Below, one piece after another: positions 1-53,990 of a DNA stretch of 64,000 bases. The position numbers were made by a program, and so were the translations under genes. A model generated the notes under the pieces. It did not search any database. It saw nothing but the letters and a program-made list of their open reading frames with translations, and was not told the DNA's origin. This DNA is from Macrostomum lignano (lineage: Eukaryota). The DNA lies in NCBI GenBank assembly GCA_002269645.1, contig NIVC01000939.1, positions 124,001-188,000 on the forward strand, in the 5' to 3' direction. The stretch's first letter is position 1. Each line of letters opens with the position of its first letter.

Positions 1-300
1 TTTGCAGGAAAATGTCTTGCCAAACTTGCCTGAAGCTGGGGGGATAAGTTTTATACTCTCTTTAAATAAGTCAAAGCAGACACGATTAAACTGTACTCAG
101 ATGCGTAATAAAGTTTTGATGACGCTTCGTAGCTCCTTACCGTCTATTTGTGAACTCTTGCTTACTTGTACTAAACAGCAATACTGCTGGCTTACTAATC
201 GCAGTAAATAACTTTTATACTATATAATCATTAGAGCTGTCTGTTACCTACATGCGCAAAGTGTACAGTACAGTGCATATTGGTCCTGGAGCAATGCCGG

Positions 301-2262: not shown

Positions 2263-2979
2263 TCAGTCCGCAGCTCTGCGCAGCGCTTCAAAAGTAGTGG
2301 CGAGATCCCCGACCAACTTCTGCGTCTCCTTGATCTGACCGGCCCGCGCCTCCAGACCGTTCAGAATGTTCACCAGAGCTTCGTTCGCCTGCGATACGAT
2401 TGGTGCGAGCATTTGCTCAAGGTTTGGCCTCCGCTTCAACAGTCCCTTCAACTTGTACAGCCCCTTCTTCAAGTGACGGAAGATGTTCAGCTTGCGGAAT
2501 ATTCTCCGGATCCTAGACTGATCCTCAGACACAGTGTAAAGCGCCGCAAACGGATCCTCGGCAGACGGAGTCTAAAGCGCTGCAGGCGGATCCTCGGAAG
2601 GCGGATCCTGGGAAGGCGAATCCTCGGAAACTGGAAGCGGAAACGCCTCCATTTCTGCTGCAGCTGGACTTCTTCCTCCGGACTCAGGTCGTACTGTTGG
2701 GGGCGAAGTATTGCAACAATAAGGTTTTTAATACGCTGAATACGACGATGACGATGCGACAACCCACTTGATTTCTCACCAAATCGGGGTCGTCCAGCAG
2801 CTCCAGTGCCTCCAGATTGTCCGCCTCCGCTTCGTCAGCGGGCTCCAACAGGTTCTCCACTACTGGAGACTCCGCTTCGGCTGCCAGCTCCCAGGTGGGC
2901 GGCTGCGGCTCCTAGGAGCAGCAGCAGCGGCAGCAGGTGCAGCCGGTAGCCGGTGAGCATTTTCCCGGTAGCCATGCCT
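2263..2979 (-). pseudogene. Secreted cationic LPRIR-repeat peptide precursor, copy A (two frameshifts); exon 1 about 2777-2979, exon 2 2263-2693
   Basis: Paralogous to copy B over the signal peptide, acidic spacer, YDLSPEEEVQLQQKW, LPRIR repeats and C-terminal helix. A 29-nt deletion in exon 1 relative to B gives a stop at 2835. Exon 2 is 431 nt (not 3n): the LPRIR frame (ORF 2487-2762) and the C-terminal frame (ORF 2263-2532) differ. Confidence 0.7.
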
Positions 2980-3229
2980 GTAGCAAAGCTGGGGTGCAGG
3001 AGAAGCTGGTCTGGGTGCTTATGATTATGATTATCTCGACGGTCTGGAGGGCTGGCGACTTCATTCTTATTTGAAAAGGTGCGCAACAAAATGTCAGCCG
3101 GTGTTCTTGAATTTCGTATGCCTGCGTTGCTCCGTTCCGGCGCAGCAAAAAAATGTCAGGGGGGATTCTGATTCATCTTGGTAGTTCGACGGGCGGAAAA
3201 ATGGCTTGGTATTCCCACTGTTAATATTA

Positions 3230-3544
3230 GCCGAGTGTGCAAGCTCGTACGACGTAAGAGTCGGTTTTCTTAGTAAATGTTGATGTCGGGATTGGTTTGT
3301 TTTTTGGCCAGGATGTTTTTGGCATGTCATTCCATTTAGATCAGTAGTTGTAAGGATTGTGCTGGGATAGCTAATTTTAAATATCAGGGCATTATGCATA
3401 AATATATGTAGATCTTGATCTAAGATGAAATTTTGTTGTCCCAGGGGGTGGGGTGGTTTTTTCCGAAAACTTGCTTGGTGATTGTGCCCTAGAAGCCCCG
3501 TCATGAAGACTATGCTAAGCAGACGCGATTAGACTTTACTCGGC
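3230..3544. mobile_element. Possible small MITE (TIR GCCGAGT...ACTCGGC, TA flanks)
   Basis: tagccgagt at 3228-3236 and actcggcta at 3538-3546 form a 9-bp inverted pair bounding about 315 bp between copies A and B. The TIR is short. Confidence 0.35.
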
Positions 3545-3780
3545 TACGTATAAATTTTAGTTGACGCTTCGTAGCTCCTCTAACTTATATTTAGGAACTT
3601 TTGATTACACTTGCAACAATCAGCAATACTGGTGGCATCAGGTTACTTATCGCAGGAGATAACACGTATACTATAATCATTAAAATTGTCTGTTACTTTC
3701 ATGTACATACTAAGTGCACAGCACAGTGCATAATAGTGACTCAAAGCGTGCCTTGGGTGTCGGAGCGCCTCCAACCTGAT

Positions 3781-4564
3781 TCACGCGCTCACCGCAGCTC
3801 TGCGCAACTGTTTCAGAGTCGTGGCGAGATCCCGGACAATTTTTTGCGTCTCCACGATTTGGCCGGCCTGTGACTCCAGGCCGTTTAGAATATTCACCAG
3901 AGCTTCGTTCGCTTGTGATATGATTGGTGCGAGCATATGCTCTAAATGTACCTTCCGCCGCACCACTCGCTTCAGCTTGCTCAGCGTCTTCTTCAAGTGA
4001 TGGAAGACGTTTAGCTTGCGGAATATCCTCCGAATCTTCGGCAGACGCAGGCGGATCCTCGGCAGGCGGATCCTCGGAAGGCGGATCCTCGGCAGGCGGA
4101 TCCTCGGCAGGCGGATCCTCGGCAGGCGGATCCTCGGCAGGCGGATCCTCGGCAGGCGGATCCTCGGCAGGCGGATCCTCGGCAGGCGGATCCTCGGCAG
4201 GCGGAAGCGGAACCATTTCTGCTGCAGCTGGACTTGTTCCTCGGGACTCAGATCGTACTGTTGTGGGTGAAGTATTGCAACGATAAGGTTAAAATACGCC
4301 GGATGCGACGGTCCGGAAAGCTGTTTGATTTCTCACCAAATCGGGGTCGTCCAGCAGCTCCAGCGCCTCCAGGTTGTCCGCCTCAGCCTCATCAGCGGGC
4401 TCCAACAGGTTCTCCTCTACTGGAGACTCCGCTTCGGCTGCCAGCTTCTCCTCGGGTTCCGCGGCCACCGCCTCACCCAGGTGGGCGGCTGCAGCTCCTA
4501 GGAGCAGCAGCAGCAGCGGCAGCAGGTGCAGCCGGTAGCCGGTGAGCATTTTCCCGGTAGCCAT
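3781..4564 (-). CDS. Secreted cationic LPRIR-repeat peptide precursor, copy B (intact, about 234 aa): complement(join(3781..4257,4337..4564))
   Basis: ATG at 4564 (or 4549), hydrophobic signal peptide [14 protein letters not shown], acidic spacer, donor TTG|GTGAGA at 4337/4336, 79-nt phase-0 intron, acceptor CAACAG|TAC at 4258/4257. Exon 2 is 477 nt, open: [19 protein letters not shown](LPRIR)10[89 protein letters not shown]. Confidence 0.8.
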
Positions 4565-5405
4565 GCCTGTAGCAGAGCTGGGGTGCGAGAGACGCGGGCC
4601 TGAGAGCTGCACAGGCACCGCTTTTATGCAGCCGCCCGAAACCCGGATTCCCCGCGTGAATCCGTATTTTGCTTCTGACAAAAGGAAGACATAGTGGCCA
4701 GCAAATCCTGGAGCTCTGAGGTGCCCCGCCTCTGTGCTGGCCAAATCCCGGGTGTGAGAGGCTGCAGACTGTTCTCAAGTCGACACTGAATATTCTTCTA
4801 TTTTCGCGTGGGCAGCAGTGTCGAAACAATAAAGGTGAATGTAAATTTTAGCGAAGACCCGCCGTTTAGAATGACTGGCTTCGTCTGTGATGGCGGACTG
4901 CGGATTCACATAACAGTTATGCATGATGCTTTTTAACTCTAGCGAGTTTTAACGAATCTAAGCAGCATCGGATCAAAAATATTAGTGCGAAGTTATGCAT
5001 TGCGCTCGTAATTCGTCTCTCCTTGTCCCACTTCAGAGTTTTGTTTTACAAAGATTGCTCACCACCTTGTCAACGTTACCATTTTATAATTATGCAATCA
5101 AATCATTGACCTTTTACGTGTTTTGCAAAATTTAATCAATCAACAAAGAAAAACAAATTTTATTGATATTTTATAACGGAAAGAGTAACAACTCATAGCA
5201 GTTTAAGTTTATTAAGATTTAGCGCTTGTGCCACTCGAAGAGTTGCAATATTCATTGCAGGATGTTTAGTCGCATGTAATTACTGGAAACCGTAAAGTGT
5301 ACTATTAAATGGAGCTGTCAGTTACCACACTGAGACAAAAATCATAGCTATTTATTGTCCGCTGTTCTCAATTGAGTTCAGCAACCCGGGCCAGTCGGCA
5401 TTGCC

Positions 5406-5870
5406 TCAGCCGACGCGGCGGCTCAGGGACTCCTGATCGCGCGCCAGCCGCAGCACCGCCTGCTGGATCTGCGCCAGACCCTTGGACTGCGCCTGCATCT
5501 CGTTGCTCATCTGCTGCATGACATCGCTGAGGCGGTTGATGGCGCTCGTTGGCCTCATGCGGGCGGCCTCCGCCAAGCTGGCGCGCATGCCGCTGAAGTC
5601 GGTGCGCAGGCTGCTGAAGCGGGGCGTCCACTTCTGCTGCTGGCTGAGGCTCGACTGGAATGCGCAGGGTCAGGAGGGTCAAGAGGTCAGTCAGGGCGAG
5701 TAGCCGCTCAAGTCAATTTTCGGGTGCGAGTCTCAAGTTAATACTTAGTTAAGACTTACGTCATCAATCTCAGCAGTGCCATCCGAAGAATCGGGCTCAC
5801 TTTGAGCAGCGGCTGCTCCTAGAAGCAGCAGCACGGCGAGGGCCGCGGTGGGAAGCAGTTGGGTGCGCAT
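5406..5870 (-). CDS. Divergent secreted precursor, copy C (about 119 aa): complement(join(5406..5654,5760..5870))
   Basis: [37 protein letters not shown], donor GAC|GTAAGT at 5760/5759, acceptor TTCCAG|TCG at 5655/5654, phase 0. Then SSLSQQQKWTPRF... and a heptad-rich helical tail. Shares LLLLGAAAA, intron phase and QQKW with copies A and B. Confidence 0.7.
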
Positions 5871-6461
5871 TGCGTTGCGTTCGTCTCTGCGGGGCTTCTT
5901 GAGCTCGGGCTGGGTCTGAGGTCTCGGGTCGAGAGATGAAGGCCTCGCGGCCACTTGGCCTGGCGGCTTTTTATTGCGCCGGCAATCCGGGATTCGCCGC
6001 GCAGCTCCGGGATCCGAGGCACTCGTTGCAGAGGCGAGTGGCGTCCCCGAGTCCAGGATTTTCGCGGCTCAAAGTTAGAAATAAAATCAGTAGTGCTACC
6101 TCCATGCTACCTCAGTGCTCTCCATGAATCCAGGAGTTGCACTGGGGTTGTGCGGAGCGGACAATAGGCTTGAGCAGAGGGCGGCAGAGTGAGCACACTA
6201 GTAAATATTTTCAAGCGGAGAGTTCTCTGGCCTTAATGATAATGATGGCCCGGCTTTTATGAGCATTTCTATTTGCAGGTCTGCATTTCTCCTAAAAGCA
6301 GAGAGCAAGATTGTCTTGAAAATCTGACTGTGAATTTAGAAGCCAATGCTGTACTTTCGAGAGGCAATCATTTTTACATATAAGGAAAATTAAAGAAAAC
6401 TTGAAATTTGGGAATTGGTCAGAGAACCAGACTGAACGGAGAAATGTTGCTTAAAGAGCGA

Positions 6462-9130
6462 GAGTGAATGTGAATCTGAGTGCGAGAGTGAATGTGCGAG
6501 AGTGAATTTGAATTTGAGTGTTAGAGTGAATGTTTATCTGAGTTTTATAGTGAATGTGAATCTGAGTTTTATAGTGAATGTGAATCTGAGTGTTAGTGTG
6601 AATGTGAATCTGAGTGTTAGTGTGAATGTGAATCTGAGTGTTAGTGTGAATGTGAATCTGAGTGTTAGTGTGAATGTTAATCTGAGTTTTATAGTGAATG
6701 TGAATCTGAGTTTTATAGTGAATGTGAATCTGAGTTTTATAGTGAATGTGAATCTAAGTGTCAGAGTGAATGTGAATCTGAGTGTCAGAGTGAATGTGAA
6801 TCTAAGTGTCAGAGTGAATGTGAACCTGAGTGTCAGAGTGAATGTGAATCTGAGTTTTATAGTGAATGTGAACCTGAGTGTCAGAGTGAATGTGAATCTG
6901 AGTTTTATAGTGAATGTGAACCTGAGTGTCAGAGTGAATGTGAACCTGGGTGTTAGTGTGAATGTGAATCTGAGTGTTAGTGTGAATGTGAATCTGAGTT
7001 TTATAGTGAATGTGAATCTGAGTTTTATAGTGAATGTGAATCTGAGTTTTATAGTGAATGTGAATCAAAGTTTTATAGTGAATGTGAATCTGAGTGTTAG
7101 AGTGAATGTGAATCTGAGTTTTATAGTGAATGTGAATCTGAGTGTTAGAGTGAATGTGAATCTGAGTTTTATAGTGAATGTGAATCTGAGTTTTATAGTG
7201 AATGTGAATCTGAGTGTTAGAGTGAATGTGAATCTGAGTTTTATTGTGAATGTGAATCTGAGTGTTAGTGTGAATGTGAATCTGAGTGTTAGTGTGAATG
7301 TGAATCTGAGTGTTAGTGTGAATGTGAACCTGAGTGTTAGTGTGAATGTGAATCTGAGTGTTAGTGTGAATGTGAATCTGAGTGTTAGTGTCAATATGAA
7401 TCTGAGTGTTAGTGTGAATGTGAATCTGAGTGTTAGTGTGAATGTGAATCTGAGTGTTAGTGTGAATGTGAATCTGAGTTTTATAGTGAATGTGAATCTG
7501 AGTTTTATAGTGAATGTGAATCTGAGTTTTATAGTGAATGTGAATCTAAGTGTCAGAGTGAATGTGAATCTGAGTGTCAGAGTGAATGTGAATCTAAGTG
7601 TCAGAGTGAATGTGAACCTGAGTGTCAGAGTGAATGTGAATCTGAGTTTTATAGTGAATGTGAACCTGAGTGTCAGAGTGAATGTGAATCTGAGTTTTAT
7701 AGTGAATGTAAACCTGAGTGTCAGAGTGAATGTGAATCTGAGCGTTAGTGTGAATGTGAATCTGAGTGTTAGTGTGAATGTGAATCTGAGTTTTATAGTG
7801 AATGTGAATCTGAGTTTTATAGTGAATGTGAATCTGAGTTTTATAGTGAATGTGAATCTGAGTGTTAGAGTGAATGTGAATCTGAGTTTTATAGTGAATG
7901 TGAATCTGAGTGTTAGAGTGAATGTGAATCTGAGTTTTAAAGTGAATGTGAATCTAAGTGTCAGAGTGAATGTGAATCTAAGTGTCAGAGTGAATGTGAA
8001 CCTGAGTGTCAGAGTGAATGTGAATCTGAGTTTTATAGTGAATGTGAATCTGAGTTTTAAAGTGAATGTGAATCTAAGTGTCAGAGTGAATGTGAATCTG
8101 AGTTTTATAGTGAATGTGAATCTAAGTGTCAGAGTGAATGTGAACCTGAGTGTCAGAGTGAATGTGAATCTGAGTTTTATAGTGAATGTGAATCTAAGTG
8201 TCAGAGTGAATGTGAACCTGAGTGTCAGAGTGAATGTGAATCTGAGTGTTAGTGTGAATGTGAATCTGAGTGTTAGTGTGAATGTGAATCTGAGTGTTGG
8301 TGTGAATGTTAATCTGAGTGTTAGTGTGAATGTGAATCTGAGTGTTAGTGTGAATCTGAACCTGAGTGTCAGTGAATGTGAACCTGAGTGTTAGTGTGAA
8401 TGTGAATCTGAGTGTTAGTGTGAATGTGAACCTGAGTGTTAGTGTGAATCTGAACCTGAGTGTCAGAGTGAATGTGAATCTGAGTGTTAGTGTGAATCTG
8501 AACCTGAGTGTCAGAGTGAATGTGAACCTGAGTGTTAGTGTGAATGTGAATCTGAGTGTTAGTGTCAATATGAATCTGAGTGTTAGTGTGAATGTGAATC
8601 TGAGTGTTAGTGTGAATGTGAACCTGAGTGTTAGTGTGAATGTGAATCTGAGTGTTAGTGTGAATATGAATCTGAGTGTTAGTGTCAATATGAATCTGAG
8701 TGTTAGTGTGAATGTGAATCTGAGTGTTAGTGTGAATGTTTATCTGAGTGTTAGTGTGAATGTGAATCTGAGTGTTAGTGTGAATGTGAACCTGAGTGTT
8801 AGTGTGAATGTGAACCTGAGTGTTAGTGTGAATGTGAATCTGAGTGTTAGTGTGAATATGAATCTGAGTGTTAGTGTCAATATGAATCTGAGTGTTAGTG
8901 TGAATGTGAATCTGAGTGTTAGTGTGAATGTTTATCTGAGTGTTAGTGTGAATGTGAATCTGAGTGTTAGTGTGAATGTGAACCTGAGTGTTAGTGTGAA
9001 TGTGAATCTGAGTGTTAGTGTGAATGTGAATCTGAGTGTTAGTGTGAATATGAATCTGAGTGTTAGTGTCAATATGAATCTGAGTGTTAGTGTGAATGTT
9101 AATCTGAGTGTTAGTGTGAATGTTTATCTG
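6462..9130. repeat. 24-bp minisatellite (GTGAATGTGAATCTGAGTGTTAGT and TTTTATA/GTCAGA variants), about 110 units
   Basis: Direct tandem periodicity; produces the VNVNLSVS pseudo-ORFs. Confidence 0.95.
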
Positions 9131-9490
9131 CTTCAGTAGCTGCCTCGATAACAGCTAGCGTAAAAAGCTACAGAAGTTTTTTGCGATATGCACTACTTAT
9201 CCAGTCTGGCCAGTAGTGACCAAAGACTTTAAATGTACACGTAAATTAAATTTTGTCAATGCATTTTTAAAAATGATGCAGGAATGTTGACAAACAGCTT
9301 TAGTATAACCTTGAACTCTTGAACTTTGGTGGCTCAGTGTCGCATTTTATTGAGACAAGGCAATAAATCACAGTATTTAACATGCAGCATAGCAATTTTG
9401 TATTTAAAAATCATATACTGATCACATGGCATTGAAACAGCAAAGTCTCGGCCTGCTTCCAATGTACACAGCGCGGCCTCAGGTGCGGCC

Positions 9491-18459
<8,969 letters not shown>

Positions 18460-20458: not shown

Positions 20459-23400
20459 TCATGGCTTCGTCAGGCCATCCAAGCAGCAATTCTCGATGAG
20501 TAGCATTGGCTCCGTGGCTTCCGTCCTGAAGTTCTGGCGAGCAAATTGCAGTTTCCTGCCGGCGCTGTAGCGGCGAGAGGTTCTGGCCGGTGACAGCGGC
20601 TCTGCGTGTTGGAAGTTGTTTATCTGAGTTTCATATTTATTGACACTGTACAACAGAGTTTTTAATAACTATAACAGATACAAATTCACATATGGCCAGC
20701 AGAGTGACAGCTAGAGCTGATCCACAATTCCGAACTTAGAAATAAACATTTTTTCCGGACTCGAACACTCTGGCAGGCAATATTGCATTTTGTGCGGGGG
20801 TGCAGGATGCTTATATGAAGATTAAATTGGCATGGCTTTGATCCGCGCAGCTTGGTGACAGCCGGCAGCTGCTGCTACACAATCCCCCGCGCGCATGCAA
20901 AAGTACAAGTGCAGCGTTGCTCAATGGAGCTGCCAGGCTCAGTCAGTCAATATCAATTTGGCAGATCCGCACCAAACACTCGCAACTCCCTGAAGGCCTT
21001 CAGTTTTCTGACACTTAACTAAATTAACCCGATCGCTGCAAGCGTAGCAGCAGCGTGCATGTGCATCTCTGTGTCCCGAGTTTGGCTCACCACGCTGCAT
21101 CCTCTAAATGGATTTCTTTGACAGACTTGCTTTTTGTGATTTTTGCCCAACCGTGAAGCGGAGTTTTACCATAGACAGGCTTCAAGAGTTCAGGGGATTT
21201 GTTAATTCAGTGCTGCATGAATCCCGCCGGTTCAAATTGTGCAGCAAAGATCGGCAACAGCAAAAATTCGCACCTGGTTGGCGACGGCGGCTGCTGCTGG
21301 CTGTGCCGCCGATGCGACCACTGCCGCACGCTGAGCAGGCCGTACAGCAGCGGGTTGGCGCAGGCCGAGGCCAGGATGAGCAGCAGGGAGGCGCTCTGCA
21401 CAATCTGGATTGGCACCTGGCGCCGGCTGATGAGCTTGGCTGTCGGCAGCAGCAGCTGCAGGTCGTTAGCGATGTTGAAGAGCGCCAGCGGCAGCCAGGC
21501 CAGCGCGAAGATGCAGGCGATGGCGGCCAGGCGGCAGTTGCTGCGCCGGTTTCGCCGGCGCTCCAGTAGCAGGCGCTGCATCTGGTAGGCCGACGACTGC
21601 TGGCTGCTCTCGCGGCGGTAGCGCAGCTTCAGGCGCAGGCGGGTGTGGATGCGGCAGTAGGCGGCCACCACGGTGGCCAGAGGCAGCAGGTACTGCAGCA
21701 GCAGCGTGGCCAGGCTGAAGGCCAGCTTGGTGGCCCGGCCAGCCCGGCTGCTGACCGCCTCGCCGCAGAGCAGCATCCGGCCGATTGGCTGCTGCGGCTG
21801 CTGCGGCTGCTGCATCATCAGCGCCTGGTTCTCGGCGACGCTGGCGAACCACAGCAGCGGGGAGGCAAGGCCGGCGGCCGCCAGCCAGATGGCCGGCACC
21901 GAGAGAGGCTGCAGTAGGGGGGAGCTGCCAGTGCTGCCGGAGCCCGACAGCCGGCGGTCGGGGCGGACGATGGTCTGCGGAGGTCAGCGTGGGCGAGTGA
22001 AGTTCAAAGGGAAGTGGATGCGTTGAAGAAACGGAGCTCTGGAAATCAGTTGAAGGGTCAAATGTGTCAGCGGTGTCAAGAAAAGAATCTGCAGTGTCAG
22101 AAAGAGGTTAGCGGTGTCAGATAGAGGTCACCATTGTCAAGACAGGGGTCAGCAGTGTCAGATTGGGGTCAGCGGTGTCACATAAGGCTCAGCAGTGTCA
22201 GGTAGTTTCAGTGTCAGGGCCAGAATATCCACCAGACCGAGTTTTTCTCGGATGCGAGAAGGCCGCAACATGAAGACATGAGGAAGCCCTGAAGTCCATG
22301 TTAGTCTGATGCGTAAAGATAGGCCTATAGTTGATTTCTGGCGTGACCTAGTTCTGGAGAAATTCAATTTATCTAAATTGGCAAACTCGAAGTTTATGCT
22401 GCGGTTTAAAGTAGCCATAAATTCCATAAATTCGTAATGCTGGACAGACTTTTTAATTGCCTGCTTTGCTGAAGAAAAATCCCAATTAAAAAGCCCGTCT
22501 GCGAGACTGACTACACATCTCCCAGGTTGCCCCGCAAACTGCTCGGCCTCGTGTTGCTTTTGCAACAATAAATTGCCGCCGTGCATCGCATTCAATGTGA
22601 AGCAGCGCCGCCCCCAATCAGAGGCCGCGCGGGTCAGCGAAAGCAATTCGGCTTTTACGGGCAAGCCGAGCGAGCAAAAGCAGAAGATCTTCAGCCAGGC
22701 TGAAAGCGAGGAAGCCGCCAGAAAACTGAGGAATCCGACGCATCCTATCTCCCCTCGGTCGCGCTTCTGTTTGATTTCCCACTCAGCCTCTCCGTCCGCA
22801 ATGCCCCCGGGTTAATCCCCTCCTACCGGCGGCCTCCCAGCGCTTATCAGGCGGCGGGATTTCTCTGCCAGAGGCGAGGGAAAAGGGGATTTTCCTGCCG
22901 GACTCGATCGAAGCCGATGGGGCGGCCCCGGCTGTCACACGGGGCTGATGGGATTGCGGAGGCAGGCAGATATTCGGGCTTAATAAAAACCGAATTTTTA
23001 TTGAGGCAGCAAAATCAATTCCCTCTGATGCCTGTTTTTGATAGAGAACGGCGTTTGTTTGCGAAGCATGACGGCGCGTTCGCTGCGCAGATTTCTCTGC
23101 AGAGCTGCCGACAGGCAATAAATCAGAGCAGCTCAGAGTGAGAAACCCGGCCAGTCATAAATGTCTTCACAGCAATAGAGCTATGTGCACCGAACTCTGC
23201 CTGAACCTGTCCATCTGCTGCTCCACTCACCCTGAACCTGTCCATCTGCTGCTCCACTCACCCTGAACCTGTCCATCTGCTGCTCCACTCACCCTGAACC
23301 TGTCCATCTGCTGCTCCACTCACCCTGAACCTGTCCATCTGCTGCTCCACTCACCCTGAACCTGTCCATCTGCTGCTCCACTCACCCTGAACCTGTCCAT

Positions 23401-24141
23401 CTGCTGCTCCACTCACCCTGAACCTGTCCATCGATCTGCTGCTCCACTCACCCTGAACCTGTCCATCTGCTGCTCCAATCACCCTGAACCTGTCCATCTG
23501 CTGCTCCACTCACCCTGAACCTGTCCATCTGCTGCTCCACTCACCCTGAACCTGTCCAGCGCGATGGCAGTGATAGAGAAGGTGGACACGAACAGGTTAA
23601 GGCCAGTCAGCCAGTTCGCCAGCTTGCAGACGGCGGTGCCAAGCGGCCAGCTCACGTGATCCTGCAGCAGGCGCAGCGCATTCACAGGCTGGGTGACGGT
23701 GCACAGCACCAAGTCCGACAAGGCCAGGTTCAGCACGAACAGCTGGCGCCGCCGAGGGCACCGCTGCTGGCGACCTCGAATTCGAGGGCCACCACGACGG
23801 CAGGCCCGAATCACCACCAGGCCGTTGCCGATGGCGCCGAGCAAAGCCAGGAGGCCCGATGCGAACAGGAGGCCCACCAGCCAGGGCAGCTCCCGGACCA
23901 GCAGCTGCTCCCAGGAGGTGCGCAGCTCAACAAAAGCGCTCGTATAGTTGGTGTCGTTGCGGCACAGATAGTACAGGTACAGCGCGTCCATCGGGTGACT
24001 GCGTCGTTGTAGCAGCTGCGATAGGCAGGGATCGGCCGTCTGGTTGATTCTGAGCATCTTGTCTGAGTTCTGGTGACACTCGTACGGCGATGAGGACTTG
24101 CGAATTTGGTCAGGATTAACATCGCCTATACATCCTCTCAT
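20459..24141 (-). CDS. Class A neuropeptide GPCR, NPY/NPF or PrRP receptor-like; exons 23545-24141, 21274-21974 and a probable tail exon 20459-20645
   Basis: TM1 GAIGNGLV, TM2 FVLNLALSDL, WPLGTAVCKL, TM3 VSTFSITAIALDRFR|TIVRP (phase-0 splice), TM5 QYLLPL...AYCRI, TM6 FALAWLPL, TM7 SACANPLLYG. Exon 3 rests on phase-2 compatibility only; without it the ORF ends at 21207. Confidence 0.85.
23198..23555. repeat. 31-bp minisatellite duplicating the GPCR exon 1 splice donor
   Basis: Unit CTGAACCTGTCCATCTGCTGCTCCACTCACC; the minus strand contains GACAGGTTCAGG|GTGAGT. About 11 units. Confidence 0.95.
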
Positions 24142-27335: not shown

Positions 27336-30300
27336 ATGCAACTACTTAGACTATTCCAATGTGCTCGCCACTTGGGCCTCCATGGCTGCAAGGCATTGCA
27401 ACTCAGGAAGATAACTGGGCATGTATCTAGCATTGTAAGCTCACCTAATTTTTATTTCTGTTTAATCTATTCTGTAAGAGTACATCAGTGTACTTTGTGT
27501 TCTGTAAGAGTAAATCAGTGTAAATTGTGCACCAATTTGCTCTACATCATCCAGGACCAAATGGATGTCACCAAGATCCGGAACATCGGGATCTCGGCGC
27601 ACATCGACAGCGGCAAGACCACCCTGACTGAGCGGGTTCTGTTCTACACCGGGCGAGTCGGCGAGATGCACGAAGTTCGCGGCACCGACGGTGTGGGCGC
27701 TGTGATGGACTTCATGGAGCTGGAGAGGCAGCGGGGCATCACCATCCAGTCTGCTGCCACCTACACCGAGTGGGCTGGTCACGTGATCAACATCATCGAC
27801 ACTCCCGGCCACGTGGACTTCACCATCGAGGTGCGTTGAGCGGTGTGGATTTAGTGCTAACAATCGAGTATTCGGTCACAGTGTAGGGTCATTGCCATCA
27901 GTATTCGGTCACAGTGTAGGGTCATTACTCTAGTAAGGCTATGGCCATCAGTATTCGGTCACAATGTAGGGTCATTACTCTAGTAAGGCTATGGCCATCA
28001 GTATTCGGTCACAATGTAGGGTCATTACTCTAGTAAGGCTATGGCCATCAGTATTCGGTCACAATGTAGGGTCATTGCTCTAGTAAGGCTATGGCCATCA
28101 GTATTCGGTCACAATGTAGGGTCATTACTCTTTACGAGCTAACCTTGCGCTTCAGTATCATGATGAACCCTCGTTTGCGACTATCGTTTCACTTGGGTTT
28201 ATTTTTACTGTATTTTTATTGTTGTATTGTACTCGTATAAAGAGTCTGCTAGAATGAGGATACCTCTTCCCCCATCACAGGTGGAGCGCGCCCTCCGCGT
28301 GCTGGACGGCGCCATCCTTGTGCTCTGCGCCGTCGGCGGCGTGCAGTCGCAGACGCTGACGGTGAACCGGCAGATGCTGCGCTACAATGTACCCTGTCTG
28401 GCCTTCATCAACAAGCTGGACAGGCAGGGCGCCAACCCCGTCAGGGTGCTGCACCAGATCCGGCACAAGCTCAAGCACACCGCCGCCTTCATGCAGCTGC
28501 CGGTCGGCCTGCAGAGCCAGCACGAGGCCGTCATCGATCTGGTTGACGAGTGCGTCATGCACTTCGACGAGCCGCACGGGCTCACGGTGAGTCTCCGCGT
28601 CCTCTGTGCCCAGTCACTGGAACCATCGGCACTCCTTCCTTTGCGCCCAGGCACTCTGGAAACATCGGCACTCCTTCCTTTGCATTTGCACCCAGGCACT
28701 CTGGAACCATCGGCGCTCCTTCCTTTGCACCCAGGCACTCTGGAACCATCGGCACTCCTTCCTTTGCATTTGCACCCAGGCACTCTGGAACCATCGGCAC
28801 TCCTTCCTTTGCACCCAGGCACTCTGGAACCATCGGCACTCCTTCCTTTGCACCCAGGCACTCTGGAACCATCGGCACTCCTTCCTTTGCACCCAGGCAC
28901 TCTGGAACCATCGGCACTCCTTCCTTTGCACCCAGGCACTCTGGAACCATCGGCACTCCTTCCTTTGCACCCAGGCACTCTGGAACCATCGGCACTCCTT
29001 CCTTTGCACCCAGGCACTCTGGAACCATCGGCACTCCTTCCTTTGCACCCAGGCACTCTGGAACCATCGGCACTCCTTCCTTTGCACCCAGGCATTCTGG
29101 AACCGCTTCCTTTCCCGCAGGTGCGCCGAGAGCCGGTGCCGCCGGAGCGGCGCGCGGAGACGGCGGAGCGCCGGCAGGAGCTGGTGGAATGCGTGGCCAA
29201 CGTGGATGACGAGCTGGGCGAGCTGGTGCTGATGGACCAGCGGCCGAGCCGCGACCAGCTGAAGGCGGCCATCAGGCGGGCCTGTCTTCAGCGCAGCTTC
29301 ACGCCGGTGTTCCTCGGCACTGCCCTGCGCAACAAGGGCGTGCAGCCGCTGCTGGACGGCGTGGTGGACTACCTGCCCAACCCCACCGAGGTGCAGAACT
29401 ACGCCTTCAGGCAAGGCGAGCCGGACCAGGAGCCGGTCAGGCTGCACCTCAATCCCGAGCGCTCCTGCCGGCTGCCGTTCCTCGGGCTGGCGTTCAAGCT
29501 GGAGGCCGGGTCGTACGGCCAGCTCAGCTACTTCCGGGTGTACCAAGTGAGCCTTGGGTGGCTGAGCATGAGACTTCCGGGCGTACCAGGTGAGCCTTGG
29601 GTGGCTGAGCATGAGACTTCGGGGTGTACCAGGTGAGCCTTGGGTGGCTGAGCATGAGCGCAGGGTCACCTTGCGAGCATGTATCTGTTGTACGTACGAT
29701 GTCATTAGCATGTGTGCAACCAGCCGCTGTACGCCTGCAGGGATGCCTCAAGCGCGGCGACACGATGACCAACGCGCGCACAGGCCGGAAAGTCCGAGTC
29801 CAGCGGCTGGTGAAGATGCACGCCAACGAGATGGCCGAAGTCAAGGAGGTGTACGCTGGCGACATTTGCGCCACGTTCGGCGTTGACTGCGCCTCCGGCG
29901 ACACCTTCGTGACTGGAGGCCTGCACGACGTCAGCATGGAGTCGATCTTCGTCCCGGACCCGGTGGTGTCCATGTCCATCAAGCCGAAGGAGTCCCGCAT
30001 GCAAGAGAACTTCGCCAAAGGCCTGCAGCGCTTCCTCAAGGAGGACCCGACTCTGCGCATGTCTTTCAACGAGGAATTCCGGGAGACCATCCTGTCAGGC
30101 ATGGGCGAGCTGCACCTGGAGATCTACGCGCAGCGGCTGGAGCGCGAGTACAAGGCGCCCTGCGTGCTGGGCAAGCCGAAGGTTTGGCCTCTGGGGGTTC
30201 TGATCTACAGACACTGAAACAGATGTTAGGACAGGCACCAGACAGACGCACTAGCACAGACAGGCACTAGGACAGACAGGCACTGGGACAGACAGGCCCT

Positions 30301-33243
30301 AGGACAGACAGGCACTGGGACAGACAGGCACTCGGACAGACAGGCACCAGGACAGGCAGGCACTAGGACAGACAGGCACTGGGGCAGACAGGCACCAGGA
30401 CAGACAGGCACCAGGACATACAGGCACCAGGACAGACAGGCCCTAGGACAGACAGGCACTGGGGCAGACAGGCACTGGGACAGACAGGCACTGGGACAGA
30501 CAGGCCCTAGGACAGACAGGCACTGGGGCAGACAGGCACCAGGACAGACAGGCACCAGGACATACAGGCACCAGGACAGACAGGCCCTAGGACAGACAGG
30601 CACTGGGGCAGACAGGCACTGGGACAGACAGGCACTGGGACAGACAGGCACTGGGACAGACAGGCACCAGGACAGACAGGCCCTAGGACAGACAGACACT
30701 GGGACAGACAGGCCCTAGGACAGACAGGCACCAGGACAGACAGGCACCAGGACAGACAGGCACCAGGACGTACAGGCACCAGGACAGACAGGCCCTAGGA
30801 CAGACAGGCACTGGGGCAGACAGGCACTGGGACAGACAGGCACTGGGACAGACAGGCCCTAGGACAGACAGGCACTGGGGCAGACAGGCACCAGGACAGA
30901 CAGGCACCAGGACATACAGGCACCAGGACAGACAGGCCCTAGGACAGACAGGCACTGGGGCAGACAGGCACTGGGACAGACAGGCACTGGGACAGACAGG
31001 CACTGGGACAGACAGGCACTGGGACAGACAGGCACCAGGACAGACAGGCCCTAGGACAGACAGACACTGGGACAGACAGGCCCTAGGACAGACAGGCACC
31101 AGGACAGACAGGCACCAGGACAGACAGGCACTCGGACAGACAGGCTCCAGGACAGGCGGGCACTAGGACAGGCAGGCACTGGGACAGACAGGCACCAGGA
31201 CAGACAGGCACCAGGACAGACAGGCACCAGGACAGACAGGCACCAGGACAGACAGGCACTGGGACAGACAGGCACCAGGACAGACAGGCACCAGGACAGA
31301 CAGGCACTGGGACAGACAGGCACCAGGACAGACAGGCACCAGGACAGACAGACACCAGGACAGACAGGCACCAAGACAGGCAGGCACCAGGACAGACAGG
31401 CACTGGGGCAGACAGGCCCTAGGACAGACAGGCACTGGGACAGACAGGCCCTAGGACAGGCAGGCACTAAAACCGACAGACGCACGAAATTCGAATGCGG
31501 TTCTCTATCCGCTGTCAGGTGGCCTTCCGCGAGACCCTGTCGGAGCCGTACCAATTTGACTACCTGCACAAGAAGCAGTCTGGCGGCGCCGGCCAGTTCG
31601 CTCGCATCATCGGCGTAGTGGAGCCGCTACCCCCGGAGAAGTGCACCACCCTCGAGTTTGTTGACGAGACCACCGGCACCAACGTGCCAAAGAACTTCGT
31701 GCCGGCCGTGGAGAAGGGCTTCCGGTTGGCCTGCGAGAAAGGCCAGCTGACCGGAAATCCTTGCGTTGGCATGCGCTTCCGCCTGCAGGACGGCGCGCAT
31801 CACAAGGTTTGTCAGTCTATGGTATCTTGTGTCACTCTAGTGCATCTTGTGTCACTCTAGTGCATCTTGTGTCAATCTAGTGCATTTTGTGTCAGTCTAG
31901 TGCACCTTGTGTCACTCTAGTGCATCTTGTGTCAGTCTAGTGCACCTTGTGTCAGTCTAGTGCACCTTGTGTCACTCTAGTGCATCTTGTGTCACTCTAG
32001 TGCATCTTGTGTCACTCTAGTGCATCTTGTGTCACTCTAGTGCATCTTGTGTCAGTCTAGTGCACCTTGTGTCACTCTAGTGCATCTTGTGTCAGTCTAG
32101 TGCACCTTGTGTCACTCTAGTGCATCTTGTGTCAGTCTAGTGCACCTTGTGTCACTCTAGTGCATCTTGTGTCAGTCTAGTGCACCTTGTGTCACTCTAG
32201 TGCATCTTGTGTCAGTCTAGTGCACCTTGTGTCACTCTAGTGCATCTTGTGTCAGTCTAGTGCACCTTGTGTCACTCTAGTGCATCTTGTGTCAGTCTAG
32301 TGCACCTTGTGTCACTCTAGTGCATCTTGTGTCACTCTAGTGCATCTTGTGTCAGTCTAGTGCACCTTGTGTCACTCTAGTGCATCTTGTGTCAGTCTAG
32401 TGCACCTTGTGTCACTCTAGTGCATCTTGTGTCACTCTAGTGCATCTTGTGTCACTCTAGTGCATCTTGTGTTAGTCTAGTGCACCTTGTGTCACTCTAG
32501 TGCATCTTGTGTCAGTCTAGTGCACCTTGTGTCACTCTAGTGCATCTTGTGTCACTCTAGTGCATCTTGTGTCAGTCTAGTGCACCTTGTGTCACTCTAG
32601 TGCATCTTGTGTCAGTCTAGTGCACCTTGTGTCACTCTAGTGCATCTTGTGTCAGTCTAGTGCACCTTGTGTCACTCTAGTGCATCTTGTGTCACTCTAG
32701 TGCATCTTGTGTCAGTCTAGTGCACCTTGTGTCACTCTAGTGCATCTTGTGTCAGTCTAGTGCACCTTGTGTCACTCTAGTGCATCTTGTGTCAGTCTGG
32801 CAGCCTTCTCACCTCAACTGTCGCAATTTGAATTTCAGGTGGACAGCAGCGACTGGGCCTTCCAGCTGGCCGCCATGCACGCGGTCCGCGAGATGCAGGA
32901 CCACGGCACCTGGAACCTGCTGGAGCCGGTGATGCTGGTGGAGGTGAACACCCCGGTGGAGTTCCAGACGGTGGTGATGGCGGCGCTGGTCCGGCGCACC
33001 GGCCTCATCACCCACTCTGACCTCATGGAGGACACCTGTGTGATCGAGTGCGAGGTGCCGCTCAACCACATGTTCGGCTTCATCGGTGAGCTGCGCAGCC
33101 TCACGCAGGGCAAGGGCGAGTTCGTGATGGAGTACAGCCGCTACTGCCCCGTGCCCTCCGACCTGCAGCTGCAGCTCGTGTCCGAGTACCGCAACCTGGA
33201 GACCCAGGCGACTAGCAGCAAGAAGGCCAGCGCCAAGAAGTAG
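27336..33243 (+). CDS. GFM1: Mitochondrial elongation factor G1, about 746 aa; exons 27336-27434, 27555-27830, 28281-28586, 29121-29546, 29741-30181, 31519-31806, 32839-33243
   Basis: [88 protein letters not shown]. All introns are phase-0 GT-AG. The N-terminal exon resembles a mitochondrial targeting peptide (less certain). Confidence 0.95.
27867..28130. repeat. 50-bp intronic minisatellite
   Basis: CAGTATTCGGTCACAATGTAGGGTCATTACTCTAGTAAGGCTATGGCCAT, about 5 units. Confidence 0.9.
28615..29105. repeat. 39/45-bp intronic minisatellite
   Basis: CACTCTGGAACCATCGGCACTCCTTCCTTTGCACCCAGG, about 12 units in GFM1 intron 28587-29120. Confidence 0.95.
29537..29660. repeat. 43-bp tandem duplication of a GFM1 splice donor
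   Basis: GTGAGCC donors at 29547, 29590 and 29633. Confidence 0.9.
30225..31470. repeat. 16-bp intronic minisatellite (GACAGACAGGCACTGG variants)
   Basis: Tandem periodicity filling GFM1 intron 30182-31518. Confidence 0.95.
31825..32800. repeat. 20-bp intronic minisatellite (TGCATCTTGTGTCACTCTAG / TGCACCTTGTGTCAGTCTAG variants)
   Basis: About 48 units filling GFM1 intron 31807-32838. Confidence 0.95.
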
Positions 33244-34394: not shown

Positions 34395-35400
34395 CAAATC
34401 CCATAGATTAGGGATCGAATCCCATAGATTAGGAATCGAGTCCCATAGATTAAGGATCGAATCTCATAGATTAGGAATCGAATCCCATAGATTAGGAATC
34501 GAATCCCATAGATTAAGGATCGAATCCCGTAGATTAAGGATCGAATCTCATAGATTAGGAATCGAATCCCATAGATTAGAAATCAAATCCCATAGATTAG
34601 GAATCGAATCCCGTAGATTAAGGATCGAATCCCATAAATTAGAAATCGAATCCCATAGATTAAGGATCGAATCCCATAGATTAAGGATCGAATCCCATAG
34701 ATTAAGGATCGAATCCCATAGATTAAGGATCGAATCCCATAGATTAAGGATCGAATCCCATAGTTTTAGGATCGAATCCCGTAGATTAAGGATCGAATCT
34801 CATAGATTAGGAATCGAATCCCATAGATTAAGGATCGAATCCCGTAGATTAAGGATCGAATCTCATAGATTAGGAATCGAATCCCATAGATTAGAAATCA
34901 AATCCCATAGATTAGGAATCGAATCCCGTAGATTAAGGATCGAATCCCATAAATTAGAAATCGAATCCCATAGATTAAGGATCGAATCCCATAGATTAAG
35001 GATCGAATCCCATAGATTAAGGATCGAATCCCATAGATTAAGGATCGAATCCCATAGTTTTAGGATCAAATCCCATAGATTAAGGATCGAATCCCGTAGA
35101 TTAAGGATCGAATCTCATAGATTAGGAATCGAATCCCATAGATTAGAAATCAAATCCCATAGATTAGGAATCGAATCCCGTAGATTAAGGATCGAATCTC
35201 ATAGATTAGGAATCGAATCCCATAGATTAGAAATCAAATCCCATAGATTAGGAATCGAATCCCATAAATTAGAAATCGAATCCCATAGATTAAGGATCGA
35301 ATCCCATAGATTAAGGATCGAATCCCATAGATTAAGGATCGAATCCCATAGATTAAGGATCGAATCCCATAGTTTTAGGATCAAATCCCATAGCGTAGGG
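34395..35400. repeat. 21-bp minisatellite (GAATCCCATAGATTAAGGATC)
   Basis: About 47 units upstream of the first recognisable lipase exon. Confidence 0.95.
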
Positions 35401-45455: not shown

Positions 45456-47210
45456 ATGAAGCTCATAGTGCATAATGATGTGGCACAGGACTGTGAGCTG
45501 CATGGAGGAGGATATGAGCAACCCAAGTACACAGCTGAGAAAGTCACTGATGTATCAGTGATTAAAAGAGGCTGCGTGATCAGCAGAAGATCAGGCACAA
45601 GTCAGCCATACTCACATTATGTTGTGATTGCTGTTCATGATCAAAATGACAAAGAAATCGACCAAACGCATGACCGAAACAAGAAAATGAAGTTGACAGT
45701 TATGACATACGCGATCAAATTCAAAAGGTCATTTGATACTCAGTTTGAGATTGTGCAAATGCAACTTGACCTTGACAATGTAAACAAGGACGCAGTATAC
45801 TTGATAAAGTACCAAGCGATGGAGCGCACCCGCTGCTCACCTGATGAAGTTGTGAGCAGAGCATTGTCTCGTGAAGGCGAGCGCGAGCATGACATTGAGT
45901 TGAACAGCAGCCGAGACTTTGCCAGATGGTGCAGCATCAAGCATGCGAGTAACAGAGAGCAGTGCAGAGTGAGAGTTCATTCAGCTCAGCAGCTGCTGGA
46001 CTTTAACAGAGGGCACATTCGCTTCCCACGTTACAGTGTTGCCAATAAATCTGTGTATGATCATCATGCATTGATGTGTCACAGTGAAGCAGTGGCTGGT
46101 CACTGTGATCTGGTTCGTGTGACACTTTATGAGAATAACAGTGAGTTAAAGAGAGTGAGAGCAGAGAACTTGAGCATTCCAGCAGATCAAACTGTGACTA
46201 GATATATTTATGATGGAGCAGACTGTAACGATTTGAGTGACAGGTATGATTCTGTGATGGGTCTGACATTCATTGATGCAGCAAACAAAATGAGCAGTGC
46301 TGACTTCTGCTTTTGGTTGAGAACTGGAGGCAGCTTCAGTGACTTGTTGGCTATAAAAGATAAACGCAGGTCGAGGCCTGAATCACTGCAGGAGAGATTA
46401 GTCAAAGGAAATGATTTGAGGGACTCAGACCACATTAAACTTGTCAAAAAAATACACGGCAAAGAGCAGGAAGTACATTATGTTCTGACAAGCTGGGATC
46501 AACCGTCGCAGACTTGGAATGCAGTGACTTATGAGTTTGAGGAGGATCACAGTCTGCAGTTAGGAGTCAGGCGGGTCACGGGAGTTCTGCAAATCAATGA
46601 GAACAGCAAAGTTGATAAAGTCGTTCACAACCGGGAGATTGACTGGAACGAAGTTGAGAAGAAATTCAATGAGCTGCGTGGGATGCAGATCTACGATCTG
46701 AAATACTTCAACTGTGAGCATCTTGTGAATTATCTGACTCTGGGACGCAAGTATTCAAGGCAGTGGTACGATGCAATTAAGAATTCCGCTCGTGCTGGCA
46801 GCCGTTCCAATGAACTGATGGTGTTGACGGCCGTGATAAATCTTCTGACCAAACTATCGCCTGAAACAGAAGCCGCAGTTTCTTTTATTCCGGATATGGG
46901 CACTGTAATTTGTGAATCAATCGCCATTGCAATTGCTGTTGCTATGTTTATCATCAAGCTGATCAGAATAACTCGCAATTGTTCTCGCAACAGAATGTCT
47001 GACAATGAGTTTCGTGTTGAAAGGAAGAGAGCGATATTCCTGTTTGTAGCTGCAGTTGCTGGAGTGATTTCAACTGCTGTAGTGATGACTGCATCGCCTT
47101 ATTTCGTACTTGGCTTCCTCTCCAGTGCGCCGATCGCGGCTGCTCTTTGTCTTGGAGCAGCCGGCCTGTGTCGTGCGCCAGCTGCATACCGAATGATGAC
47201 TGAGCCTTGA
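45456..47210 (+). CDS. Intronless 584-aa protein with three tandem LRAT/NlpC-P60 (PLAAT/H-rev107-like) repeats and C-terminal hydrophobic helices
   Basis: Repeat 1 YSHY...PDEVVSRALSREGE...NSSRDFARWC; repeat 2 YDHHA...MSSADFCFWLRTG; repeat 3 DHIKL...HY...YDLKYFNCEHLVNYLTLG. Hydrophobic segments IAIAIAVAMFII and IFLFVAAVAGVISTAVVM. Confidence 0.75.
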   Translation: MKLIVHNDVAQDCELHGGGYEQPKYTAEKVTDVSVIKRGCVISRRSGTSQPYSHYVVIAVHDQNDKEIDQTHDRNKKMKLTVMTYAIKFKRSFDTQFEIVQMQLDLDNVNKDAVYLIKYQAMERTRCSPDEVVSRALSREGEREHDIELNSSRDFARWCSIKHASNREQCRVRVHSAQQLLDFNRGHIRFPRYSVANKSVYDHHALMCHSEAVAGHCDLVRVTLYENNSELKRVRAENLSIPADQTVTRYIYDGADCNDLSDRYDSVMGLTFIDAANKMSSADFCFWLRTGGSFSDLLAIKDKRRSRPESLQERLVKGNDLRDSDHIKLVKKIHGKEQEVHYVLTSWDQPSQTWNAVTYEFEEDHSLQLGVRRVTGVLQINENSKVDKVVHNREIDWNEVEKKFNELRGMQIYDLKYFNCEHLVNYLTLGRKYSRQWYDAIKNSARAGSRSNELMVLTAVINLLTKLSPETEAAVSFIPDMGTVICESIAIAIAVAMFIIKLIRITRNCSRNRMSDNEFRVERKRAIFLFVAAVAGVISTAVVMTASPYFVLGFLSSAPIAAALCLGAAGLCRAPAAYRMMTEP

Positions 47211-49560: not shown

Positions 49561-50461
49561 CGTACATGTACATATGATGGCAGGTTACTTATCCAGCCGC
49601 TACATGTACATATGATGGCAGGTTACTTATCCAGCCGCTACATGTACATATGATGGCAGGAGGTTACTTATCCAGCCGCTACATGTACATATGATGGCAG
49701 GAGGTTACTTATCCAGCCGCTACATGTACATATGATGGCAGGTTACTTATCCAGCCGCTACATGTACATATGATGGCAGGAGGTTACTTATCCAGCCGCT
49801 ACATGTACATATGATGGCAGGTTACTTATCCAGCCGCTACATGTACATATGATGGCAGGAGGTTACTTATCCAGCCAATACATGTACATATGATGGCAGG
49901 AGGTTACTTATCCAGCCGCTACATGTACATATGATGGCAGGTTACTTATCCAGCCGCTACATGTACATATGATGGCAGGAGGTTACTTATCCAGCCGCTA
50001 CATGTACATATGATGGCAGGAGGTTACTTATCCAGCCGCTACATGTACATATGATGGCAGAGGTTACTTATCCAGCCGCTACATGTACATATGATGGCAG
50101 GAGGTTACTTATCCAGCCGCTACATGTACATATGATGGCAGGAGGTTACTTATCCAGCCGCTACATGTACATATGATGGCAGGTTACTTATCCAGCCGCT
50201 ACATTTACATATGATGGCAGGAGGTTACTTATCCAGCCAATACATGTACATATGATGGCAGGAGGTTACTTATCCAGCCGCTACATGTACATATGATGGC
50301 AGGTTACTTATCCAGCCGCTACATGTACATATGATGGCAGGAGGTTACTTATCCAGCCGCTACATGTACATATGATGGCAGGAGGTTACTTATCCAGCCG
50401 CTACATGTACATATGATGGCAGGAGGTTACTTATCCAGCCGCTACATGTACATGGGAATGA
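49557..50461. repeat. 38/41-bp minisatellite (GGTTACTTATCCAGCCGCTACATGTACATATGATGGCA with or without GGA)
   Basis: About 22 tandem units with a palindromic TACATGTA core and no spacers. Confidence 0.95.
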
Positions 50462-53244: not shown

Positions 53245-53990
53245 CGGGTGAAGTGTCCCAGTCTGAGGACAATGGCGGGTGAAGTGTCCCAGTCTGAGGA
53301 CAATGGCGGGTGAAGTGTCCCAGTCTGAGGACAATGGCGGGTGAAGTGTCCCAGTCTGAGGACAATGGCGGGTGAAGTGTCCCAGTCTGAGGACAATGGC
53401 GGGTGAAGTGTCCCAGTCTGAGGACAATGGCGGGTGAAGTGTCCCAGTCTGAGGACAATGGCGGGTGAAGTGTCCCAGTCTGAGGACAATGGCGGGTGAA
53501 GTGTCCCAGTCTGAGGACAATGGCGGGTGAAGTGTCCCAGTCTGAGGACCAATGGCGGGTGAAGTGTCCCAGTCTGAGGACCAATGGCGGGTGAAGTGTC
53601 CCAGTCTGAGGATCAATGGCGGGTGAAGTGTCCCAGTCTGAGGATCAATGGCGGGTGAAGTGTCCCAGTCTGAGGATCAATGGCGGGTGAAGTGTCTCAA
53701 TCTGAGGACCAATGGCGGGTGAAGTGTCCCAGTCTGAGGACCAATGGCGGGTGAAGTGTCCCAGTCTGAGGACCAATGGCGGGTGAAGTGTCTCAGTCTG
53801 AGGACCAATGGCGGGTGAAGTGTCCCAGTCTGAGGACCAATGGCGGGTGAAGTGTCCCAGTCTGAGGACCAATGGCGGGTGAAGTGTCCCAGTCTGAGGA
53901 CCAATGGCGGGTGAAGTGTCCCAGTCTGAGGACAATGGCGGGTGAAGTGTCCCAGTCTGAGGACCAATGGCGGGTGAAGTGTCCCAGCAT
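53245..53990. repeat. 31/32-bp minisatellite (GGGTGAAGTGTCCCAGTCTGAGGACAATGGC)
   Basis: About 23 tandem units between GLYCTK and GMF. Confidence 0.95.

Follow-up and report, generated by a model that had tools for sequence, protein, structure and literature searches.

Two orphan Macrostomum lignano genes for apparent secretory precursors with opposed charge blocks, one carrying an in-frame (LPRIR)n minisatellite

Genes at the locus

The stretch analysed here, called the window throughout, comprises 64,000 nucleotides of the Macrostomum lignano genome (assembly GCA_002269645.1, contig NIVC01000939.1, positions 124,001 to 188,000 of the forward strand); all positions are counted from its first letter. 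Near its start lie two intact two-exon genes, B and C, and one dead copy, A, in tandem and all on the minus strand. B encodes an apparently secreted protein in which an acidic block is followed by a strongly cationic block containing ten LPRIR pentapeptides, and it is the main subject of this report. An original prediction, made by a model from the letters of the DNA, had described three two-exon genes on the same strand; the strand, the two-exon layout and the coordinates stood, but A proved to be a pseudogene.

The coding sequence of gene B begins with the ATG at 4564. Exon 1 (4337..4564) encodes an apparent signal peptide (4564-4484) and then most of the acidic block, and is separated by a 79-nt GT-AG intron of phase 0 (4258..4336) from exon 2 (3781..4257 including the stop codon), which encodes the end of the acidic block, the sequence QQKW, the cationic block and a helical tail; the spliced product has 234 aa. 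In gene C, exon 1 (5760..5870) encodes an apparent signal peptide followed by the acidic sequence QSEPDSSDGTAEIDD, the intron (5655..5759; 105 nt) is likewise GT-AG and of phase 0, and exon 2 (5406..5654 including the stop codon) encodes SSLSQQQKW and then a mildly basic helical region of net charge +5, giving a spliced product of 119 aa. The spliced product of B is 100% identical to GenBank entry PAA74545.1 (hypothetical protein BOX15_Mlig030454g1) and that of C is 100% identical to PAA74546.1, likewise a hypothetical protein. For this assembly the GenBank annotation derives from a genome-guided assembly of RNA-seq data, with StringTie/TACO, boundary evidence and TransDecoder open reading frames (ORFs; PMC5730564). 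Because B and C equal proteins derived from RNA-seq, their reading frame and the junctions 4337/4257 and 5760/5654, both of which had been proposed from the DNA letters and match the GenBank models, have transcript support; B and C are thus confirmed as real, spliced and transcribed genes of M. lignano. An older ML2/UniProt model, P0011 (UniRef100_A0A1I8GUT5; ~5406-12600), fuses C with the coiled-coil gene upstream into a 452-aa 'J domain-containing protein'. Both this model and the 'DUF148 domain-containing' label on C look like annotation artefacts, the one a read-through model and the other a sub-threshold domain match.

Gene copies and their relationships

Pseudogene A occupies 2263..2975 on the minus strand (exon 1, 2975-2780; intron, 86 nt; exon 2, 2693-2263). 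Exon 1 has lost 3 bp at one place and 29 bp at another, the latter loss shifting the frame; in exon 2 the repeat array has shrunk to ~3 units and an 8-bp insertion shifts the frame. Homology of A to B begins only ~35 nt upstream of the ATG, so that A is without a promoter, and A is a pseudogene that arose as a 5'-truncated duplicate. Downstream of A (in the sense of the minus strand), a degenerate, GGAGATC/CCGGAGA-rich repeat of ~31 bp extends over 1950-2260 (Tandem Repeats Finder (TRF): 2138-2197, period 31) and has no counterpart at the duplicate locus.

This duplicate locus, L001, lies on contig NIVC01000944.1 and has the same gene order (DUF4200 gene, C-like gene, B-type gene, EF-hand gene) with a single B-type gene, which encodes P0002 (PAA74498.1). 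C is 99% conserved between the two loci. Over promoter and exon 1 the B-type gene of L001 shares 98% identity with B, and over the intron 92%; its tail is 94.8% identical to that of A and only 82% to that of B (3781-4257 vs 2263-2693 vs L001:8326-8796); synonymous divergence (dS) from B is 0.30 in the tail and 0.05 in exon 1. This mosaic pattern of identity indicates that recombination or gene conversion has shuffled tails between tandem copies. The intron of B diverges more between copies (79% identity) than the exons do (93-95%). The ratio of non-synonymous to synonymous divergence (dN/dS) of the tail is ~0.5 in all comparisons, which points to purifying selection of moderate strength, with nothing to suggest positive selection. 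Past its stop codon, L001 jumps to the homologue of window positions 1-299, from which it follows that the window's copy alone has the ~3.5 kb that includes A.

Gene C is taken, with moderate confidence, to be a distant paralogue of B. The signal peptides of the two match better than chance (none of 2000 shuffles reached the score), the tails can be aligned ungapped and in register over 41 residues (a score reached by 14 of 2000 shuffles), a phase-0 intron lies just upstream of QQKW in both genes, and a promoter block described below is common to both. The kinship claimed in the original prediction is thereby upheld as regards common origin, but the resemblance itself is weak (BLASTP of C against B, E = 0.027; hhalign of the two tails, not significant).

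Protein architecture

Protein B consists, in order, of a signal-peptide-like N-terminus, a 63-aa acidic block, QQKW, an 88-aa cationic block that starts at the W of QQKW, and a 56-aa helical tail. The acidic block contains 21 D/E and 2 K (net -19). The cationic block, W...VVRRK (3952..4215, minus strand), contains 29 R and 7 K and no D/E (net +36), and encloses (LPRIR)10 (4051..4200, minus strand), which is encoded by an in-frame 15-bp minisatellite with the unit CTGCCGAGGATCCGC; TRF places the array at 4047-4205, with 10.6 copies and 98% matches. A recount returned exactly the figures given in the original prediction (21 D/E and 2 K in the 63-aa spacer, 36 R/K and no D/E in the 88 aa, ten LPRIR). 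An amphipathic helix with a hydrophobic moment of 0.60-0.66 is predicted around residues 158-181, and the tail (3784..3951, minus strand) has no net charge. In an alignment of B, A and P0002 the amphipathic helix is nearly invariant and the core of the tail invariant, which agrees with the earlier observation of a helical tail kept between A and B.

By inspection, the N-termini of B and C each have a basic n-region, a hydrophobic core of 16-17 residues and AAA before the likely cleavage point, which would lie between AAA and H in B and between AAA and Q in C. Together with the charge counts this bears out the reading of both proteins as having a signal-peptide-like N-terminus and an acidic block, joined in B by the hyper-cationic repeat block. 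Anionic charge precedes cationic charge in all of them (B, -19/+36; P0002, -20/+38; C, -5/+5), and the acidic and basic blocks scale together when B and P0002 are compared with C. At the exon junction of B (4290-4240, residues ~70-82, DDPDLYDLSPEE) a single Tyr stands in a purely acidic context and is conserved in both A and P0002. By inspection it resembles a site of tyrosine sulfation, a modification that would be in line with a secretory route.

Structures of B and C were predicted with AlphaFold2 (AF2) from single sequences, and overall confidence was low (predicted local distance difference test (pLDDT), 61.6 and 64.1). In the model of B the repeat is disordered (pLDDT 41-56), as is much of the acidic block, and one long helix is predicted over residues 149-233, with a pLDDT of 80-92 in the tail. 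The model of C has two long helices (37-68 and 72-118); a fold search with it gave only non-specific helical matches, none significant and none to Ani s 5.

Reading frame of the repeat

The array of B is open in all three frames, and an ATG-initiated ORF in the AEDPP frame (3710-4216, 168 aa) appears in the ORF list. Units of the repeat encoding P0002 deviate from the consensus CTGCCGAGGATCCGC by the variants CTA, CTT (three times), AGA and CGG. The CTA, CTT and AGA variants leave the amino acid unchanged in the LPRIR frame but alter it in both others, the CGG variant replaces Pro by Arg and so keeps the cationic character, and the other two frames of the L001 repeat are closed by stop codons where the array ends. 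The LPRIR frame alone joins the signal peptide to the conserved tail. Translation of the array in another frame (CRGSA or AEDPP, the latter including the 168-aa ORF) was rejected on account of the synonymous variants, the stops and this continuity from signal peptide to tail. Across the copies the repeat number is 10 (B), 8 and ~3 (A), and the array predates the split of A and B (tail dS 0.3-0.4).

Shared promoter element

Upstream of B, on the minus strand, a promoter block CGCGGGGAATCCGGGTTT (4639..4656) lies within the inverted repeat CGGATTC-N7-GAATCCG and is followed by a TATA-like CATAAAAG (4628-4621); the annotated transcript begins ~27 nt farther downstream (~4600). The corresponding block of C, CGCGGCGAATCCCGGATT (5984..6001, minus strand), contains the palindrome AATCCCGGATT and precedes a TATA-like AATAAAAAG (5975-5967, minus strand). 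The common arrangement is CGCGG[G/C]GAATCC[G/C]GG[T/A]TT, then the TATA-like box, then AGGCCnnCnTCTCTCG. Within the 64 kb the motif CGCGGSGAATCCSGGWTT is confined to the regions upstream of B and C (chance expectation, 0.03 matches), and the element is also found upstream of both L001 genes. The block is a possible binding site of a dimeric factor. A kB site was considered and rejected, as the strict consensus GGGRNWYYCC matches neither promoter.

Searches for homologues

Word-indexed protein searches with B and C returned only M. lignano proteins, and when 1.84 billion representative proteins were scanned in full with HMMER, using a profile built on helix and tail, P0002 was the sole match. 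Pfam recognized no domain in B and no neuropeptide family, PDB sequence searches gave only coiled-coil noise, metagenome scans yielded no homologue and Rfam no match. The gene identifiers and peptide strings were not mentioned in the searchable literature. No known protein family was matched significantly in these sequence and profile searches, and the proposal of an undescribed family stands: its members are annotated as hypothetical proteins, have no homologue outside M. lignano and have left no mention in the literature. As far as these databases reach, from which other Macrostomum species are probably missing, B and C form an orphan family.

Comparison with antimicrobial precursors

Protein B may be a secreted, charge-masked polycationic effector, probably serving host defence; the probability of this reading is put at roughly 0.35. 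The argument for an antimicrobial role is one of analogy, drawn from charge and composition. According to the mechanism envisaged, in-frame growth of a 15-bp minisatellite would have enlarged the basic block to WFRFR(LPRIR)10 and a cationic amphipathic helix; the acidic block is correspondingly larger than that of C. During transit through the secretory pathway and storage in granules, the polycation would be neutralized by the acidic block. Once released, and whether or not it is cut by proteases, the protein would bind polyanions such as microbial envelopes through its Arg-rich block and amphipathic helix, and the conserved helical tail may serve sorting or oligomerization. We infer secretion, charge masking, processing and target from this layout. 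A fuller version, in which a minisatellite-built (LPRIR)n polycation with its amphipathic helix would be silenced by the acidic block, multimerized by the tail and deployed in defence under the palindromic promoter element common to C, must be called unlikely.

The closest parallel in design is offered by the antimicrobial peptides (AMPs) of Hydra, described as restricted to their taxon, encoded by tandem duplicates and divided into parts of opposite charge (PMC10945409). Like the arminin and periculin precursors, B has an apparent signal peptide followed by separate negative and strongly positive parts, and both systems form small clusters of tandem paralogues that have no homologues outside their lineage (PMC10945409). 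There is no sequence relationship, however, and the cationic part of B is built from a pentapeptide minisatellite and followed by a conserved neutral helical tail. The charge-scaled bipartite layout, the tandem paralogues and the lineage restriction agree with the Hydra pattern, and B and C are rated, by analogy, as a kind of taxon-restricted secretory precursor of bipartite charge.

The likeness to proline-rich antimicrobial peptides (PrAMPs) is more superficial. In their precursors, PrAMPs are preceded by a cathelin domain or by a short insect propeptide, and B has neither. B shares with Bac5, Bac7, PR-39, Tur1A and oncocin a composition very rich in Arg, among which Pro, Leu, Ile and Phe are scattered, and short motifs such as RFR and PRI(P)R. 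PrAMPs have been defined by at least 25% proline and a net charge of at least +1, the PRP motif being indicative and not essential (Welch et al. 2020, PMC7736402). The block of B, at +36, lies well within the charge limit, but proline makes up only 11 of the 60 residues (18%) of WFRFR(LPRIR)10LRLPK and 12.5% of the 88-aa block, in which neither PRP nor PP occurs. Smith-Waterman alignments with nine PrAMPs (1000 shuffles each) gave z from -1.3 to +1.3, not above controls. PrAMP membership was rejected on the low proline and on these alignments, which are no better than shuffles, and the comparison with Bac7 and PR-39 made in the original prediction is reduced to one of composition. Membership of the cathelicidins was also rejected, there being no cathelin-like pro-domain and no Pfam domain in B or C. 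Cationic amphipathic alpha-helical AMPs (LL-37-like) and helminth defence molecules (FhHDM-1) resemble B in that its residues ~150-178 form a predicted helix of high hydrophobic moment and a charge of ~+13, and resemble C in that it too is small, apparently secreted and all-helical, but no homology to them was detectable in Pfam, PDB or HMMER searches. The family of B and C is outside the PrAMP, cathelicidin and SXP/RAL-2 families, the last of which is taken up below.

Besides the shortfall in proline and the alignments at the level of shuffles, several findings weigh against a defence effector. The best-conserved and best-folded part of B is its neutral tail, which a model in which the cationic peptide is simply the product leaves unexplained. 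Pro at P1' is unfavourable for convertases. The cleavages proposed earlier, at the K-W bond of QQKW and at the basic cluster, would have to occur at non-canonical convertase sites: the former lacks basic residues at P4, P6 and P8, and the cluster reads RRK-V in B and KRR-P, with Pro following, in A and P0002. More extensive cutting of B is conceivable, as every LPRIR repeat contains a minimal RxxR. In the Macrostomum literature searched, no expression site, secretion or peptide record for B or C was found. The identifiers Mlig030454, Mlig026096, Mlig012871 and Mlig013400 and the sequence strings did not occur in the texts and the accessible portions of the supplements of Macrostomum papers, which is weak evidence, all the more as identifiers may have been renumbered between transcriptome versions. 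Finally, the window is rich in repeats of this kind: its 64 kb hold at least 22 strong minisatellites (TRF score at least 300; periods 4 to 192), and tandem repeats make up 15% of the M. lignano genome (PMC5730564), so that a 15-bp array is in itself ordinary; the 98% likeness of the B units implies recent expansion or homogenization; and the test of synonymous variants involves 4 distinct changes and is suggestive (roughly p = 0.09 by estimate). The array is noteworthy for its exonic site, its period of a multiple of three, its age and its frame constraint, not for being a tandem repeat.

Other explanations

A role as gland or seminal secretion is about as likely as one in host defence. B and C could be products of reproductive or other glands (seminal or prostate, cement or shell, pharyngeal, rhabdite or mucus), in which the charge blocks would drive dense granule packing by self-coacervation, or binding to partner tissue or substrate, and not the killing of microbes. 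For the idea that rhabdites consist of arginine-rich basic proteins the searchable literature offered no confirmation. Block polyampholytes are a classic coacervating design, known from marine adhesives, and B has this design; on the other hand it has no Tyr/DOPA (3,4-dihydroxyphenylalanine), Cys or glycosylation-rich motifs of the sort typical of adhesives and mucus. Orphan status, tandem duplication, pseudogenization, change of repeat number and conversion mosaicism are typical of fast-turnover secretory genes, and the conserved tail of B suggests that the intact protein matters. Many gland-specific orphan transcripts are known in M. lignano, for example the Mlig-pro series in the published table of in situ hybridization probes, but the four gene identifiers are absent from this table, which is complete and covers prostate, antrum, gonads and cement glands (file 16, PMC7336406). 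In the portion of a Macrostomum primer table that was available, none of the unmapped primers matches the B/C locus. The proposal that function resides in the C-like helical domain, from QQKW to the tail, and that (LPRIR)n is a tolerated, largely neutral minisatellite in a disordered linker is in our judgement unlikely. It would be in keeping with the density of minisatellites and the near-identity of the units noted above, with the varying copy number (10, 8 and ~3), with the disorder of the repeat in the AF2 model and with the 99% conservation, between the loci, of a C that has no repeat at all. Yet neither functional copy has lost the open frame through the array, which has collapsed only in pseudogene A; most of the unit variants are silent when read as LPRIR, the sole amino-acid change, from Pro to Arg, leaves the block cationic, and the acidic block is enlarged in parallel.

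Far less probable are two further readings. B might be a polyprotein of many small signalling peptides, of the neuropeptide or pheromone type, cut between RLPR and I; an apparent signal peptide, an acidic spacer, ten identical units and the minimal furin-type RxxR in each unit would suit such a precursor, but the units abut without spacers, dibasic KR/RR flanks and a Gly for amidation are missing, the paralogue C has no repeats and Pfam finds no neuropeptide family, so that this is very improbable. Equally remote is the idea, implied by the UniProt name of A0A1I8H630, that C and its family are diverged SXP/RAL-2 proteins (DUF148, Ani s 5-like). SXP/RAL-2 nematode proteins are small, secreted and helical, C shows weak similarity to Pfam PF02520 (SXP/RAL-2, formerly DUF148; 15.8 bits, E = 0.015), and it is this sub-threshold match that accounts for the UniRef name 'DUF148 domain-containing protein' given to the ML2 version of C. 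The score is ~14 bits under the gathering threshold of 29.3 bits, however; protein P0010 reached only 14.5 bits, B does not match the family at all, and PDB sequence searches and the fold search with the C model gave non-specific helical matches and no Ani s 5. Membership of C was rejected on these grounds.

The innate-immune effectors of flatworms are poorly known, and M. lignano is tractable by RNA interference, in situ hybridization and transgenesis. If the fuller version of the defence reading is true, free-living flatworms would have yielded their first lineage-restricted family of antimicrobial peptides. A microbicidal B would be an antimicrobial polycation that arose by in-frame minisatellite expansion with co-expansion of its neutralizing acidic block, and its Leu/Ile-Pro-Arg pentads would constitute a new scaffold distinct from the ribosome-targeting peptides of the PRP type. 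As a gland or ejaculate protein it would add another to the orphan secretory genes that evolve fast, and would chiefly concern those who work on Macrostomum.

Remainder of the window

None of the neighbouring genes suggests a function for B or C. Just upstream of C lies a DUF4200 coiled-coil gene (~9491-12600, minus strand). Farther away are GPCR-like exons (G-protein-coupled receptor; 21207-24141, minus strand), a glycerate-kinase-like gene (DUF4147 + MOFRL; 50665-52861, minus strand) and a single-exon gene of the ADF/cofilin fold (GMF-like; 54571-55017, minus strand). A 584-aa single-exon ORF on the plus strand (45456-47210), for which no recorded gene with exactly this product was present in the collection searched, has an N-terminal domain of the LRAT/NlpC-P60 type (Pfam LRAT, E = 6.9e-8) and hydrophobic C-terminal segments. 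Minisatellite-rich stretches occur, for example, at 6460-9130, 12398-13129, 13738-14724, 30230-31469, 31824-32798, 34397-35393, 49563-50453 and 53245-53987, and many minisatellites create long spurious ORFs in several frames. One of 39 bp (28617-29104) is situated inside a long plus-strand ORF (28227-29636) that otherwise resembles an exon of mitochondrial elongation factor G, whose exons extend from ~27336 to ~33243.

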